Source of the DNA: Phaeosaccion multiseriatum
Lineage: Eukaryota > Protista > Ochrophyta, other classes
DNA: 64,000 nt
Reading direction: 5' to 3'
Assembly: GCA_965112735.1 (NCBI GenBank)
Contig: OZ218955.1
Coordinates: 2,418,001-2,482,000, forward strand
The notes beneath the pieces are model-generated. The model saw only the letters and a list, made by a program, of their open reading frames with translations. It had not been told where the DNA came from and made no database searches. A program made the translations under genes and the position numbers. Of the stretch, positions 7,267 through 17,661 are shown piece by piece (positions within the stretch are counted from its first letter, which is position 1; every line of letters starts with the position of its first letter).

Positions 7267-9619
7267 CTACCCTCCCAAGCCGCCACCCCAGGACGGCGCT
7301 GCAGGCGTGGCGATGAATCCTGATGAGGGTGATGTCCGATTCAGGGTCGCAGAGGAGGAGTTGGTGGTGGAGGAGGTTTGAAAGACCTTGGCCACATGTG
7401 CCTCGATGCTCGTCTGCATGTCTACGAGCAAGCTCCGCAGCCAGGCCTCAAAGTCTGCTCCTTGCCCCGCTTGAAGCGCTCCGCTTTGGGGCTGCAGAAG
7501 AATGCGAGTAAACTTGGGCAGCACACTTTGCTCCACGAAGGACCGAATCTTGCTGCTCGGAAGTTGGCTGATGAGAGAGAGGCGACAAAGGCAGGCAGGC
7601 ACGACGGACATTTGGCGATGCGCAAAATGCCTTGTGGACGACTCCTTCCATGTACCCACACACACATACCTGTTGTACGAGAGGCGCCGGTCGTCTAGGT
7701 TGATGTTGACCGTGGGAGCGACGACGCAGAGCCGCACGCTGTTGTTGAGAGCGGCACGGAGCATCTCCTTGTGCACCGCTCGCTGTGGGCAAAGAGAAGT
7801 GTGCGGGAAGCGGAGTGTGTAAGGGCAATCTAAACTAGGAATACAGCCAAGGCACGCACAAGATCACTCACCTGGTTCTTCCCAACTTGGGCTGCTTTCT
7901 TGCTCCCGGCCCTTTCCACAAGCGCCTCCTTCTCCAGGGCCGCCGCTCTCTTGTCTGCAGAAGCCGCCTTCTCTTTCCACCTCGCGGTCTCCTCCCTCTC
8001 CTTGTGCGCCATCAATTCCGCCCCCCGCGCTGTATGCTCCACCTGCTCTCGCTTCTTCACCTCCTCTCGGATCTCCTCGTCTTTTGCTTGTAGCTTGGTG
8101 TTTACTGAGTTCAGCTCACCCCTGCATTCCGTCAGCACTTTCCGCACTTGGCCTACTTGCTCAGTCATTTCTTCCAAGCTCGCATGGGCGTCGCTGTTCT
8201 CTTGCTTTAAGGCCCTGATTATGGCCGCTGATGCTTGTCGCTGTTTGTGCAAATCTCCCATTAGTCCCTCCACCTCGTGTCGACTTGCTTCCTGCGCCTG
8301 CTCCGCGGCCTCCTTCAACTTGCCGCACCCTTTGCACGCAGCGCCAGCTGCCAGACTCTCTCTGCGCTCTTGCTGCTGGAGCTTACGCTTGTCCTCTTCG
8401 CGTTCCTGCTTGAGATTCTCCAATTCGATCTCTCTCTTTGCTCTCCAGTCTGCAGCCTCTTGCGCGGCCTGCTTGCTGCGCAACTCACTGTCCAAGTGCT
8501 GCGAGATTGAGGCGTCCAGATCCCTACGGAGCATCTGCGCCTCTCCACGCACAATCTCCAGATTCCTGTCCTGCGACGCGGCGTCTTGTCCCTTGCTCTC
8601 CAGCTGTCGGCGCAGTCCGTCCACCGCCGCGCGAAGAGATTTCTCCCGCGCTTCTGCTTCCGCCTCCCTACGCTCCATCTGCTTTTTCACTGAGCGCACA
8701 ATCTCCTCACATCTGCCTCTTTCCTCCGCAAGCCTTGCCCCAGCACTGACGCTGCTACCCTGTCCGTCGACGCAGATCACTTTCCCTGCCGCTGTGGTGG
8801 TGTTGGTGGTGGTGGGTTGGGGCTTTTCCCCAGTGTTTCCGCTTCGCCCCTGGCTGACTATTGTAAGCTGCTCCACGAGATTTTCAAGCTTGAACAGCTG
8901 TGCCCTCAGCTCTCGCCCTTCACCCCTCGTCTTTCGAAGACTCTCTCGCAGTGCCGCGCAGCTCGAGCAATCTGCGTGCTGCTTCCCTCCTCCTCCTGCT
9001 GCCCTGAACTGACTTCCTCCAACGAACCTCCCCTGTTTTGTTTTTCATGGGCAGTAACAACAAACGTAATGTAACGACTGCATTAGGAAGAGAACACTCT
9101 CCCCCCCATATGCGGGAGGCTGGGTTCCGCTTCTTCTCACTCACTCACCCTCCCCCCCCCGCTGAACTGAAGCAGGAGCGCTGTTTGAAGTCGCTTCACC
9201 TCTGCCTTGAGAGCGTCAAGGTCCTCCAGTTGATCATCGCCACCACGACGTTCCTGCCGCAGCAGAGGCTCCTCAAAGAAGAAGCCTTCGGTCGAAGCTG
9301 CTGCTGCTGCACCCCGCCCACGAGACAAGGACGGCGCTCCAACTGTTGAAGGACGCTGGTCTCCGCCAGGGCTGCCCGCCGGCACCTCGATCTCTAGCGC
9401 CGCTCTCTCAGCGACCACTCCTTCTGTGGCTGTGGCCTCGTACGGCTCGGGTGAGGAGTTGCGACGATACAAGACCGTCTTCGGCGCCCTTCTACGCAGC
9501 TGGATTGCCGTAGTAGTTGTAGCAGTAGTTGTAGCAGTAGTAGGACTGCCGCTCGGAAAGGCCAGGTTACTCGACGAGCGAGAGTAGCCTACGCTGGAGC
9601 GCGGCCTTCGCGAGCTCAT
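7267..9619 (-). CDS. Coiled-coil protein of unknown function (multi-exon)
   Basis: Ser/Thr-rich N-terminus, a long E/K/R/Q heptad exon (about 7870-8950) and a globular C-terminus (VRLCVVAPTVNINL..VLPKFTRILLQ..MQTSIEAHVAKVF). Canonical splice sites. An upstream ATG at 9724 is also possible. Confidence 0.65.
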
Positions 9620-9785: not shown

Positions 9786-12343
9786 CTACTCGGCGTGTGT
9801 CGCAATGCCATGTAAGATTTCGTTGGCATAGGCCATGTCGCCGTCTCCGATCACTACAACGTCGAAGGCCCGGGCGTACTTGGGCAGCTTGTCCAGCACG
9901 TCCCCGTCCACCTTTAAAAAGCCCACGGAGATGTGCTCCTCCTTCCCGGGCAGGCCTTGCATCAGGCCCAAGTCGCCCATGTCTCCTCCCAGCAGGAGGA
10001 CGTTTCCCCTGCTGGTGAGGACGGAAGTGTCCATGCGAGCGTTCTTCAAGAACTCGAGGATGGTCTTGCCGCTCTTGTTGGCCTCGTGAATGAGGGGCAC
10101 GGCGTCGTACATGCCAATAATGGTCATGGTGTCGTCTGTGGTGAAGAAATTGCCTACAATACGGATGTTGGGGTTGAAGGCGCCGCTGGGGCCGAGGATC
10201 TTCGGCGCCCCTCGCTTGATCACTTCCATGGCGACATTGCCTGCAGTGTGAATGAGTGCAAGAGAGAGAGGGAAAGTGTGTTGCAGGCATACAGAGGGTT
10301 TAGGGGTGGGCCTTGGATCCCTTGCTCGCCCACAGCTGTGATGAGGATGACGCACCGTATCCCGCGCAGTAGACGGTGAAAGGTACTCCGCGGAAGGCGA
10401 GACCCCCCAACATATCGTTGACTCCGTCTCTAAGGGGTATACTCGCTAGCTGCGACTCCACAGCGGGGCCAATGCTCGAAATGTGGGCGCCCCCTTCCAT
10501 GGCCGCCGTCGCGTACACCTTGTTTTTTCATTGACGATGAAAGCAAGCAAAGCGAGCGTTCTTGTTTCATTGATGAGGAAAGCAAGCAAAGCCAGAGTTT
10601 TTCCACACACAAGAGTCAGAGCGGTGGCGTAGCAGCGGTCCTCCCGGCCAGCAAGGGCTCACCTTTCGGATATGCTCTTCCAGGGCCTTGATGCGCGCTT
10701 CGGAAGTCATTTCTTTCCCCTCCGCCTGCATCCTTCGCTTGAAATCACTGCGGAGATAGCGAATCTTCTTGGCGGCCTCGGGAAGCATCACGTACTGTTC
10801 ATGGTTGAGGGGCAGAGCGCAGCAACAGTTCTGGTGAGGGAGGGTGGACTCGAGCAACACCAATCACCACCGAAGAGGGCCGCCATACCTGATTCTGCTC
10901 CAACAATTCAGTGCTCCGAAGAGTGGGACGTGTGGACGCGGCCTCCGTGAACCTCGTGAGACAGTGGTCGAACGAACAGAGCACTTGCAGCTTGCCCATG
11001 CCGTCGGCCGCAAACTTTTTCCTCTTCCTCTGCAGCTCGTTCGGCTTGAGCACAAAGACAATGCTTTCATCCACCTTGACATACTCAGGCGTACCCGGCC
11101 CTCCATCCTTCATCAAGTCCTGCCCGCCCATCATGCCATTGAAGCCGTAGGCTGGTGGAGGTGCCTGGACAGGCTTCTCCAGAGTACTTCCTTTCGGCCG
11201 AAACGAAGGGGCACCTCCCGCCTCGCCCGTGGCCCCGCTGCCCGCTCCCTGCTGGTCACTATTGTCTCCCTGAAAAACCTTCCCCTTGATGCGATCCCAT
11301 ACGCCCTTCTCTGGGCCTTGAGGGTAGTGCTGCCCTTGTTGCCCTTGCCCCCCCTGCTGAGGCGGCCTATGCTGCTGATGCTGATGCTGCTGCTGCTGCT
11401 GCTGCTGCTGCGGATACTGCTGCTGTTGTTGTTGGCTTGGCGGTCTTTGCTGCTGTTGTGATTGTCCCTGACCGGGAGGTCCATATGCACCCCTCGCTGG
11501 ACCTGCCACTGTCAACGCGCCTCCAACACCACCCTGCTTTTGTTGCTGCTGCTGTTGCTGCTGCTGTGGATTCTGAGCGGGCTGCTGCTGCCCTCCCCAG
11601 TACTGGGACTCTCCGTAGCCCCCGCCCCCACCCCCCCCACCCCCTCCTCCGTATGCGCCCTGGTGCGGCTGTTGCTGTGAACCATCTTCCCCTCTAATCT
11701 TGTTTGCCAAGCGTGACAACAGCCCGGGCCCCTCTACCTGCGGCTTTGGTTGGTACTGCTGCTGCTGGGGCGGTGGTCTGTATTGCTGCTGCTGCTGTTG
11801 CTGGTAAGGGCTTCCTACTGCAGATCCGGGAGGACCAAAACTCCCTCCTCCTGCCGCTCCGCCGGCTGGGCGTTGGCCGAGGTATTGTTGCTGCTGCTGC
11901 TGTGGGTACCCATGCGAGACCCCCCCCCCACCCCCTCCCCCCGGCTCTGGTTGACCTCGACGTGCCTGTTGTTGCTGCTGCTGCTGCTGATGCTGCTGCT
12001 GCTGCTGATGCTGCTGCTGCTGCTGCGGTTGCCTCGGCGGCGGCTGCTCATCTCTGCTACTGCTACTGCCGTAAGGCCCGTACCCCGACACAGAATGCCC
12101 GCCCACGGGAGCTGCCGAGCTAACTGGAAGCCCGTCTTTAGGTGGTCTCTGCTGCGGCGGCTGTTGTCGCTGCTGTTGCTCTAGTGGCTGCTGCTGCCAT
12201 TGCTGCTGTTGCGGGGCTTGGCCCCGTGGAGGCTGCGGCCGCCCTGCTTGCGAGGGATACCCACCCCCGCTCTCCTGTGCAAACGCTACTGGCGAGAGAG
12301 TAAGAAGCAGGAGAGTGAAGGGCTTACTTACAACCCCTAACAT
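9786..12343 (-). CDS. Pyrimidine 5'-nucleotidase (NT5C3/UMPH-1)-like HAD protein with signal peptide and Q/P/G-rich N-terminal extension
   Basis: KLQVLCSFDHCLTRF, IPLRDGV, PFTVYCAGYG, NIRIVGNFF, LIHEANK, RGNVLLLGGDMGDLGL, SVGFL and YARAFDVVVIGD are collinear with NT5C3. N-terminus is MLGVVSKPFTLLLLTLSPVAFA-QE. Confidence 0.8.
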
Positions 12344-13015: not shown

Positions 13016-13313
13016 GCACCACTCCCAAGAAGGGATGGGAGAAAGAGGCCCTCTCAGTGGCGCTCTTTCAGCACAAGATCGAAGCAGCACCAGATTTCAG
13101 AGGGCTCTCTCCCGAGCTGAGCGTCGCCTCAGTCGCTCGCGATCAGCATTCTTCGGGGAAGCTCTGCTCACACAAGCAGAGAGAGGGTGTTATTTCTCCT
13201 TGCCACAAACCGTCTCTTCATCTCTGGACGAGAATCCCTGAGCAACCAGGAGGCGAAGCATGTCAGCAGCCGATGGGCATGGAGCCCATGTGCTCCCTGG
13301 TACTACTACATGG

Positions 13314-13675
13314 TACCACCAGCGTCAGCTGGCTTTCATCTGCTACCTATTGCCCACCCAAGCCGGCGCGTGCCTCCACTTCGAGTCCTGAAGTGCTACC
13401 GACGTATTCTCGGTAGCAGGTAGCACGCCCTGGCGCTGATGCCGTCGGGACGTCGGTAGCAGGTAGCACGCCCTGGCGCTGATGCCGTCGGGGGGGGGGT
13501 GGGGGGGCAGGCCGTTCGGTAGCAGATCAAGGCCGGCTGACGCTGGTGGTAGCAGGAAGCACGCCGGCTGACGCCGGCGGTAGCAGATAGCAACTAGCAG
13601 TTCAGGGGTCGATCATCTTGGGGCAGCTATCTGCTAACGTCGGCGTCAGCGCGTCAGCCGGCCTCTCCTGCTTCT
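13314..13675. repeat. GC-rich fold-back/palindromic element (MITE-like) with an internal 43-bp tandem duplication
   Basis: 13314-13347 is a near-perfect reverse complement of 13518-13551. Central hairpin tgctaccga/tcggtagca at 13394-13418. 43-bp unit at 13410-13452 repeated from 13453. Second inverted pair at 13567-13591 and 13626-13650. Confidence 0.75.
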
Positions 13676-13913: not shown

Positions 13914-14578
13914 TCACTGACTCTTCCGGGAAGCACCCTTCTTAATCGCCTCCTTCAGGGAAGAGAGGTGTTGTTGGAGGTTGTCGACCTTCCGATGCTT
14001 GGTCACTGGTGCTCTGAACAGGGCGTGTGCGACGCAAATTACAACGCCCAATAGAAGCGAGCGGACCAGTGTAACTACAGCACCTGTAACCGATAAGATG
14101 GCGGTCCCCGCCACCGCTGCCAGCAATACTCTCGAGTTTACGTCGAGATTCCAGCCCGCGATGACACATGCCTCCGTGTTCATGGGCTGCAGATAGGCCA
14201 GAAGCAGTCCAGCCAAAACCAGGCCAAGTAGTAAGGTTGGGCTACAGAGCACCCCTAGCAGTGATGTGGCGAGAAATACAACCAAGTAGTTTACCCTAAA
14301 GTATAAAGCATTGCTATGTATTCGCTGCTGCAAGACACTCAGCTCTCCCCCCGGCTTTGTGAGGGGTCCAGAGAACTGTGCCAAAGACCGAGCTTCACGC
14401 CAATCAATCCAATCGTCATCAAGAGCGTCCCTGAGTGAGCTCAACACGTTGCCGACGGGCGACGAGCTGACTCTCTCTCGCGTTCTCTGGAGGGGAACAG
14501 CATCAATGGAGCAGGAGAAAATATAATAATTTTCAAAAATTTCTCACTTCAGATGAAGAGTACACGTACCCGAGCCAT
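13914..14578 (-). CDS. PRA1 family protein (prenylated Rab acceptor)
   Basis: QRIHSNALYFRVNY, four hydrophobic segments and CVAHALFR. A 9-nt first exon ATGGCTCGG|gtacgt splices in frame to ..ctccag|AGAACG. Confidence 0.85.

Positions 14579-14786: not shown

Positions 14787-17661
<2,875 letters not shown>

Follow-up and report, generated by a model that had tools for sequence, protein, structure and literature searches.

A leader-bearing NT5C3-like protein family of ochrophytes with a disordered Gln/Gly/Pro/Tyr-rich arm and conserved amphipathic motifs

A 64,000-nucleotide stretch of the Phaeosaccion multiseriatum genome (the window; GenBank assembly GCA_965112735.1, contig OZ218955.1, positions 2,418,001 to 2,482,000) carries on its (-) strand a four-exon gene for a protein with a signal-peptide-like leader, a long disordered arm rich in Gln, Gly, Pro and Tyr, two short amphipathic motifs within that arm, and a C-terminal NT5C3/UMPH-1-like HAD domain with an altered motif I. 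An initial annotation of this DNA had placed the leader, the low-complexity region, both motifs and the start of the HAD-like domain in a single exon, and all of them were found there, on the (-) strand (Table 1). Comparison with relatives assigns the protein to a conserved, uncharacterised ochrophyte family. We favour, with about even confidence, the reading that the N-terminal module is a secreted disordered tether whose two surface-binding helices hold a pseudo-nucleotidase.

Two copies of a conserved amphipathic motif

Each of the two amphipathic motifs picked out in the initial annotation is followed, as described there, by an acidic stretch, reading G-E-D or G-D-N-S-D. Their helical hydrophobic moments (0.61 for motif 1 and 0.49 for motif 2) are the highest in the disordered region (mean 0.20, standard deviation 0.12), and that of motif 1 is the highest in the whole protein. 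At least 25 relatives have a hydrophobic leader and a disordered region rich in P, Q, G and Y, and carry the motif once or twice; it is conserved despite surroundings that cannot be aligned. Motif 2 is near-identical across six close relatives ([LI]W[DEHS]R[IF]K[GE]KVF), and the equivalents of motif 1 in relatives include GFLSRLTSKFKG, SFLGRLTNRIR, FFSKVKNKFK, FFSRLSSRL and GFLSRLKN... The initial annotation had named a lack of conservation of the K-like motifs in relatives as grounds for abandoning its proposal; this objection falls away because the motifs are conserved in ochrophyte relatives.

Alignment of 38 instances from 25 proteins gave the family consensus G-G-[LFI]-[FLW]-[SG]-[KR]-[LI]-K-[NGS]-x-[FVI]-[F/x]-x-[GDE]-[DE]. 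Conservation extends to positions outside the pattern used for selection, with Gly ahead of the motif in 25/38 instances, a hydrophobic residue at position 9 in 37/38, and acidic residues or Gly at positions 12-13. When the motif is drawn as a helical wheel, positions 1, 2, 5 and 9, which are hydrophobic, fall within 0-100 degrees and the basic ones, 4 and 6, at 300 and 140 degrees; Lys/Arg 4 and 6 thus flank the hydrophobic face. Given this family-wide conservation, the two motifs of the window are two copies of one element. A motif-profile search of the 67-Mb genome matched only the two sites in this gene, and the motif is therefore not a general module in this genome.

AlphaFold, run on exon 1 with ten aligned sequences, assigned 361 of 485 residues a predicted local distance difference test score (pLDDT) below 50. 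The only helices that it placed in the arm were those at the two motifs, a polyglutamine (polyQ) run and a four-residue turn at 55-58. In a full-length model of the Chrysoparadoxa protein, the equivalent of motif 2 is helical at residues 229-237 (pLDDT about 55), and neither motif is docked on the domain with any confidence.

This absence of confident docking bears on an alternative in which the two helices and another conserved element, the SFRPxGS box, are protein-binding linear motifs whose target is a sorting receptor, a partner enzyme or the HAD-like domain of the same protein, the arm being a mere spacer and membrane binding playing no part. In its favour, short islands are conserved inside unalignable disorder; moreover, the invariant SFRPxGSxL box is not amphipathic, and pLDDT rises slightly (62) at that box in the Chrysoparadoxa model. 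In the same model, however, motif 2 reaches a pLDDT of only about 55 and motif 1 is disordered. The spacing is also highly variable across the family, the motifs lying 65-140 residues apart and 100-215 residues from motif I of the domain. Conservation concerns the pattern of hydrophobic and basic residues and not particular side chains, as is typical of surface-seeking helices. We consider the linear-motif account unlikely, though the most substantial challenge to a surface-binding tether.

The motifs share the G-L-W-x-[KR]-I-K start of dermaseptin-type host-defence peptides (GLWSKIKE...), which are likewise made from secreted precursors. Unlike dermaseptins, they have no dibasic sites, form a much shorter helix and have their charge neutralised by acidic flanks, so that the likeness is one of resemblance only. 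Processing into antimicrobial-type peptides was rejected on the absence of dibasic sites around the motifs.

Composition of the disordered arm

The 398-residue arm contains 113 Gln (about 28%), 79 Gly (20%), 51 Pro (13%), 23 Ser, 22 Ala and 15 Tyr (4%), together with few charges (K+R 7%, D+E 4%), three Trp, one of them within motif 2, and not a single Cys. Ten relatives have a similar composition (Q 10-29%, P 12-23%, G 6-21%, Y 3-7%, almost no Cys); the overall P/Q/G/Y-rich makeup is conserved while the arm sequence itself is not. The polyQ/Gly/Pro region with spaced Tyr described in the initial annotation is thus present and conserved in composition, but its polyQ runs are encoded by CAG/CTG arrays detected by Tandem Repeats Finder (TRF) and are not kept in relatives. 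As to its prion-like character, a label that rests on composition, the arm has 29% Q+N, low charge and 15 Tyr that stand about 26 residues apart on average, yet its Pro content of 13% argues against amyloid and its polyQ is lineage-specific. Condensate formation or self-association of the arm may be envisaged from this composition. A feature search of the ESM Atlas with residues 1-420 gave no usable match, and Pfam assigned no family to exon 1 or to the motif-bearing segment.

High molecular weight (HMW) glutenin and resilin repeats come close to the arm in composition and contexts. Like the protein of the window, cereal HMW glutenins and prolamins and resilin have a signal peptide together with a disordered region rich in Gln, Gly, Pro and Tyr; the window's protein differs from them in having no regular repeat, no terminal Cys-containing domains, fewer Tyr and a C-terminal globular domain. 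It could accordingly be asked whether the family represents secreted structural, elastomeric or adhesive matrix proteins, with an arm that self-associates or is cross-linked through Tyr, and with helices and an HAD-like domain that bind wall polyanions or phosphorylated ligands. The conserved leader, the lack of Cys in the arm and the Q/G/P/Y composition with GYG, GAYGPPG and PGQGQ-type contexts are all compatible with a matrix role. We nevertheless judge it improbable: TRF found triplet and homopolymer arrays only and no regular repeat unit, Tyr density is low (15 in 398 residues), the globular domain is far better conserved than the arm, and the family also occurs in naked or scale-bearing flagellates (Paraphysomonas, Chattonella).

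A conserved N-terminal leader

The cleavable-looking signal ending before QE that had been noted in the initial annotation was recovered as the leader MLGVVSKPFTLLLLTLSPVAFA, which has one basic residue (K7), a hydrophobic core of 12-14 residues with a mean Kyte-Doolittle value of 2.2, and Ala at both -3 and -1 of the likely cleavage site AFA/QE, in keeping with the -3/-1 rule. By rule, this leader has the basic n-region, the 7-15-residue hydrophobic core (FTLLLLTLSPV) and the small residues at -3 and -1 that characterise signal peptides. An equivalent hydrophobic leader (mean Kyte-Doolittle value 1.9-2.9 over 12 residues) is present in 11/11 family members with a complete N-terminus, and in all 11 the low-complexity region starts directly after it. 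These sequence features would predict cleavage at this site and entry into the secretory pathway.

Because the leader occurs in all N-complete members, and because the genome holds a separate, leaderless canonical NT5C3-like gene, a non-cytosolic destination fits the family. No ending resembling an endoplasmic reticulum (ER) retention signal was seen at the C-terminus.

The leader could instead form the first half of a bipartite plastid or periplastid signal, placing the protein in the chloroplast ER, the periplastidial compartment or the plastid. Under the ASAFind rule an aromatic residue or Leu stands at +1 of the cleavage site, ahead of a transit-peptide-like stretch, and the leader end VAFAQ can be read as an ASAFAP-like motif with Phe at +1 (VA/FAQE). 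A neighbouring CTP synthase has a leader ending ...CCQAFAVPP, and all named matches to the family are ochrophytes. A cut before Phe, however, puts Pro at -3 and leaves Glu four residues after the Phe, whereas cleavage at AFA/QE obeys the -3/-1 rule. Of the 10 remaining N-complete relatives, 9 place N, Q or S directly behind the likely site, where the rule would call for F/W/Y/L, and the family is retained in the colourless Paraphysomonas. A plastid or periplastid location therefore seems doubtful to us, and on these sequence grounds we favour the general secretory route over the periplastid one.

Gene structure

The three introns, of 94, 144 and 115 nt, are all GT..AG. Position 12343 is the first in-frame ATG, with an in-frame stop 13 codons upstream, and the frame of exon 1 is unbroken from the arm into the HAD-like domain (YVKVDESIVFVLKPNEL...LQVLCSFDHCLTRF...ELLEQNQ). 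The fusion with a catalytically altered NT5C3-like domain claimed in the initial annotation is borne out by this uninterrupted frame and by the same fusion in many ochrophyte relatives, including transcripts called complete. The spliced model was searched exon by exon.

Table 1. Features of the gene and its protein in the window (aa, amino acid)
Feature	Position in window	Strand	Details
Start codon and signal-peptide-like leader	12278..12343	(-)	aa 1-22, MLGVVSKPFTLLLLTLSPVAFA; likely cleavage between AFA and QE
Disordered Q/G/P/Y-rich region	11084..12277	(-)	aa 23-420, 398 residues; from composition and AlphaFold
CAG/CTG triplet array, longest polyQ/His run	11973..12026	(-)	aa ~107-125; TRF; AlphaFold helix 107-130
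Motif copy 1, GPGLLSRLANKIRG	11690-11731	(-)	aa 205-218; AlphaFold helix 208-213; genome profile match E 9e-5
Small box GALTVAGPARG	11489..11521	(-)	aa 275-285; aligned with GALVTAGPVRG, GAMTPAGPIRG and VGPARG of relatives
Motif copy 2, GPEKGVWDRIKGKVFQG	11267-11317	(-)	aa 343-359; AlphaFold helix 348-357; genome profile match E 2.7e-5
Invariant box SFRPKGSTL	11180..11206	(-)	aa 380-388; alignment of 10 sequences
Start of NT5C3/UMPH-1-like HAD domain	10889..11083	(-)	in exon 1; altered motif I; alignment to relatives
Exon 1	12343-10889	(-)	485 codons; ATG 12343, GT donor at 10888
Exon 2	10663..10794	(-)	44 aa, cap-domain helix; GT..AG introns; alignable to relatives
Exon 3	10356..10518	(-)	54 aa + 1 nt; weak UMPH-1 match
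Exon 4	9786..10240	(-)	coding 10240-9789, stop 9786-9788; C-terminal half of HAD-like domain; Pfam UMPH-1 3.7e-19

Members of the family

A word search seeded with residues 340-485 returned four closest homologues, all UMPH-1 proteins of 438-714 residues. Motif 2 (LW[DEH]RIK[GE]KVF, with greater divergence in P0004) and an invariant SFRPxGSxL box are common to all four; a motif-1-like segment (FLGRLTNRIR, FFSRLSSRL, FFSKVKNKFK) is present in the three whose N-terminus is long enough, and the two longest have a hydrophobic N-terminus. In MMETSP transcripts called 'type:complete', leader, arm and domain lie in one open reading frame (ORF). A second search added proteins from Ascophyllum nodosum, Ectocarpus, Scytosiphon and Chrysoparadoxa australica, the last of these a protein of 629 residues with a leader, an arm, GFLSRLTSKFKG, GLWDRIKGKVF and SFRPNGS.

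Members at a greater distance came to light in a profile search against 1.84 billion representatives and in another, third word search. Among them are Chattonella subsalsa, Paraphysomonas (taxid 36769), Ochromonadaceae sp. CCMP2298 and numerous unnamed sequences of metagenomic or transcriptomic origin. Every member with a long enough N-terminus has the P/Q/G/Y-rich region and one or two motif copies, such as GIFSKLKNSIIAAGSAI, GLVGKIKNLFGQDE, GLFAKLKGVFSRED, GFFSKLKSKLFVED and GFLSRLKNRVFKGDGE, and some have a third copy C-terminal to the domain. Since the layout recurs in brown algae, chrysophytes and raphidophytes, as a search of other ochrophytes suggested in the initial annotation revealed, this is a real but unstudied algal protein family. 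F381, R382, P383, G385, S386 and L388 of the SFRPKGSTL box are invariant in 10 sequences, and the box is confined to the brown-alga/Chrysoparadoxa-type subfamily. The literature on UMPH-1 in diatoms and on nucleotidase III-like proteins in brown algae yielded no paper on this family.

Chrysophyte-type members (P0015, P0022, P0025 and P0027) have an extra C-terminal tail with a third amphipathic segment, e.g. GLLRKGLFGKLMG or IRSKLGQLLG; Phe is the last residue in the majority of these tails (YGDF, NNF, VELF), P0025 ends in EYD, and the tail is absent from the protein of the window. One sequence filed under a foraminifer (P0003, from the EukProt transcriptome of Bolivina argentea) shares 68% identity with an environmental ochrophyte-like sequence and 60% with brown-algal proteins, and probably derives from algal prey, a symbiont or contamination, not from the foraminifer itself.

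The deposited Ascophyllum model (P0007; locus L013, CAXNAB020000345.1) lacks the arm and has a non-homologous N-terminus. Its locus nonetheless encodes a QPGY-rich open frame at 7733-8195, the motif-1-like GGFLSRMASRLWG at about 8896, motif 2 as GLWSRFKGKVFQGD at about 12120 and an SFRPKGS exon at 13269. In the Ectocarpus models P0008 and P0011 motif 2 is not complete either, and they may suffer from similar mis-modelling. The Scytosiphon gene begins 943 nt from a contig end, and at the Chrysoparadoxa locus the arm is spread over several exons.

These loci bear on the suspicion that the low-complexity ORF is a gene-model artefact, open only because CAG-rich DNA is free of stops, with the real start near the HAD-like domain. 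CAG/CTG-rich DNA does yield long ORFs on both strands here. The leader, motif 1, the AGPxRG box, motif 2 and SFRPxGS nevertheless occur in the same order in relatives, complete transcripts included, with 37-53% identity over the aligned part, and the Ascophyllum and Chrysoparadoxa loci carry these elements on separate exons upstream of the domain. An artefact is very improbable, and we rejected it on this conserved order.

An NT5C3-like domain without the DxDxT motif

The first 65 residues of the domain close exon 1, and its motif I reads SFDHC where DFDxT is canonical. Homology to NT5C3/UMPH-1 is evident from the Pfam UMPH-1 match in exon 4 and from scores of 65-89 bits in relatives, and the Chrysoparadoxa orthologue matches PDB 2bdu across the whole domain (phmmer, 1.3e-14). 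In the Chrysoparadoxa AlphaFold model the domain has a pLDDT above 90 from residue 310, the counterpart of the domain start in the window, and the arm is disordered. The C-terminal 300 residues of the window's protein are homologous to NT5C3A/B (UMPH-1, PF05822; PDB 2bdu, 2cn1, 7zee). Known NT5C3 enzymes are cytosolic proteins of about 290-330 residues with the motif I DFDxT, whereas the algal family adds a signal peptide and a 250-450-residue disordered arm with amphipathic motifs, and drops DxDxT.

A maximum-likelihood tree of the domain (50 rows) separated 15 short canonical proteins from 35 others that include every arm-bearing protein (branch support 100/100). DxDxT is found in 0/35 on the arm-bearing side, against 15/15 (as DFDxT) on the canonical side. 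Variants of motif I on the arm-bearing side are xFDxxLT, in which the nucleophile is lost, [RK]F[DE]xxLT, DFE[HR]V and EYERC. The domain of the arm family thus probably binds a ligand instead of hydrolysing it, as far as motif I can tell.

The gene is single-copy in the genome (67 Mb, 22 contigs) at E<=0.001. Pfam finds a second, canonical UMPH-1 gene (G000:C8:2502795-2504934, (-) strand, loci L008-L011), which has the motif I DFDFTLT (VQVIADFDFTLTAF), a short charged N-terminus, no leader and no low-complexity arm, and is presumably the true cytosolic nucleotidase.

Comparison with dehydrin K-segments

The initial annotation had called the two motifs dehydrin K-segment-like. The K-segment is defined as XKXGXX(D/E)KIK(D/E)KXPG (Malik et al. 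2017, as quoted in PMC9096783), with the consensus EKKGIMDKIKEKLPG (PMC4215689), and becomes more helical on anionic membranes, Lys flanking the hydrophobic face (PMC9096783). Scored with BLOSUM62 against the consensus, the two motifs rank 2nd and 3rd of about 90,000 fifteen-residue segments from all six frames of the whole 64-kb window, motif 2 scoring 28 at rank 2, and only 0.6% of shuffles of exon 1 reach the observed similarity score. With the hydrophobic moments and the conservation in relatives, this places the motifs beyond what chance would give. As further points in common, both kinds of protein hold more than one short amphipathic segment rich in Lys in a disordered, Gly-rich setting, and both show the core x-[KR]-I-K-x-K-Φ, basic residues beside the hydrophobic face, and a similar hydrophobic moment (0.49-0.61, against 0.48 for the K-segment consensus).

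The likeness is one of physical chemistry: the motifs are amphipathic and predicted helical, but they fail both the K-segment definition and the Pfam Dehydrin model. Motif 2 (PEKGVWDRIKGKVFQ) matches 5/10 defined positions and motif 1 3/10, with no P-G end, and the family consensus lacks both acidic K-segment positions as well as P-G. Pfam PF00257 (Dehydrin) gave no match at E<=1 with exon 1 or at E<=10 with four full-length relatives, the motif segment and 24 isolated motifs, although HMMER filters might hide very weak matches.

Dehydrins are leaderless, highly charged, fully disordered and poor in Trp and Cys, whereas the window's protein contains Trp and joins a leader and a folded HAD-like domain to an arm that is low in charge and rich in Gln and Pro. 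On these differences, and on the failed definition and Pfam search, it is not a dehydrin. The idea of a true, if divergent, homologue of dehydrins, whose K-segments came from the plant lineage by inheritance or acquisition, could draw on the BLOSUM rank of motif 2 and on the dehydrin-like antigens reported in fucoid algae (cited in PMC11763121 and PMC1550403). Homology is scarcely credible, however, in view of the Pfam result with isolated motifs, the missing acidic positions and P-G end, the Trp inside a motif, the signal peptide, an arm rich in Gln and Pro instead of charged residues, and the attached folded domain, and it was rejected on the failed definition and Pfam search. The resemblance is likely due to convergence, and by analogy the motif plausibly works like a K-segment in physical terms.

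Dehydrin-related proteins of fucoid algae were reportedly detected in 1998 with an anti-K-segment antibody, and to our knowledge no sequence has ever been assigned to these antigens. The fucoid Ascophyllum encodes GLWSRFKGKVFQGD and GGFLSRMASRLWG upstream of the domain, which makes its orthologue a speculative candidate for them. The candidacy also draws on the immunological detection itself (Li, Brawley and Close 1998, as related in PMC11763121 and PMC1550403) taken with the statement, in one of these two papers, that heterokont sequences with a K-segment are all but unknown. Identification of the Ascophyllum orthologue with a fucoid dehydrin-like antigen is speculative and would rest on its encoded motifs.

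Neighbouring genes

The first exon of a CTP synthase lies at 14787-15263 of the window on the (+) strand (Pfam CTP_synth_N, 1.7e-14). It is preceded by a polyQ run and by the hydrophobic leader ending in the ASAFAP-like CCQAFAVPP, and the enzyme may be plastid-targeted, to judge from this leader. A PRA1-family (prenylated Rab acceptor) gene at 13917-14447 on the (-) strand (Pfam 3.2e-23) is the upstream neighbour on the same strand. In the intergenic DNA upstream of the arm-bearing gene, at about 13380-13600, a G-run is surrounded by direct repeats, each of about 38 nt (cggtagcaggtagcacgccctggcgctgatgccgtcgg plus variants).

Proposed mechanism and implications

According to the model that we favour, a cleavable ER signal peptide would route the protein into the secretory pathway, where the arm of about 400 residues would serve as a long flexible tether. 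The two cationic amphipathic motifs would be unfolded in solution and become helical on contact with a surface of anionic or amphiphilic nature, for which a membrane leaflet, lumenal or outer, is the most plausible choice. Each motif has a Gly cap before it, an acidic patch after it, and Lys/Arg 4 and 6 beside the hydrophobic positions 1, 2, 5 and 9. Bound to the surface, the helices would keep the C-terminal NT5C3-like domain peripheral to the membrane, and the domain, having no DxDxT nucleophile motif, would bind a ligand, probably without hydrolysing it. Membrane or surface binding by the motifs is suggested by analogy with K-segments.

Several points weigh against this model. Each predicted helix spans only about 10 residues at a pLDDT of about 50-55, and motif 1 is non-helical in the Chrysoparadoxa model. 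A conserved short helix in disorder could equally be a protein-binding motif, and a lumenal or extracellular leaflet may carry too little anionic charge for binding. The invariant SFRPxGS box is left unexplained by surface binding. The leader assignment is rule-based; transcript support for the fusion comes from relatives only; and the literature on diatom UMPH-1 and brown-algal nucleotidase III-like proteins held no experiment on any family member.

A bolder extension of the tether model is that the family forms a new class of lumenal or extracellular surface-binding pseudo-phosphatases of ochrophytes, with K-segment-like helices convergent with those of dehydrins; that it may include the fucoid antigens; and that its arm might form condensates in the secretory pathway. 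We think it improbable that this whole picture is right. For the early report of dehydrin-like antigens in rockweeds, the family does supply a concrete candidate that is open to testing.

The only database labels of the family are 'cytosolic 5'-nucleotidase III-like' and 'unnamed', and the former is probably wrong, because every N-complete member has a leader and DxDxT is absent. Several brown-algal gene models (Ascophyllum, probably Ectocarpus) miss the N-terminal exons. The family would provide a natural system for how short surface-binding helices and low-complexity tethers work in the secretory pathway of algae with complex plastids.

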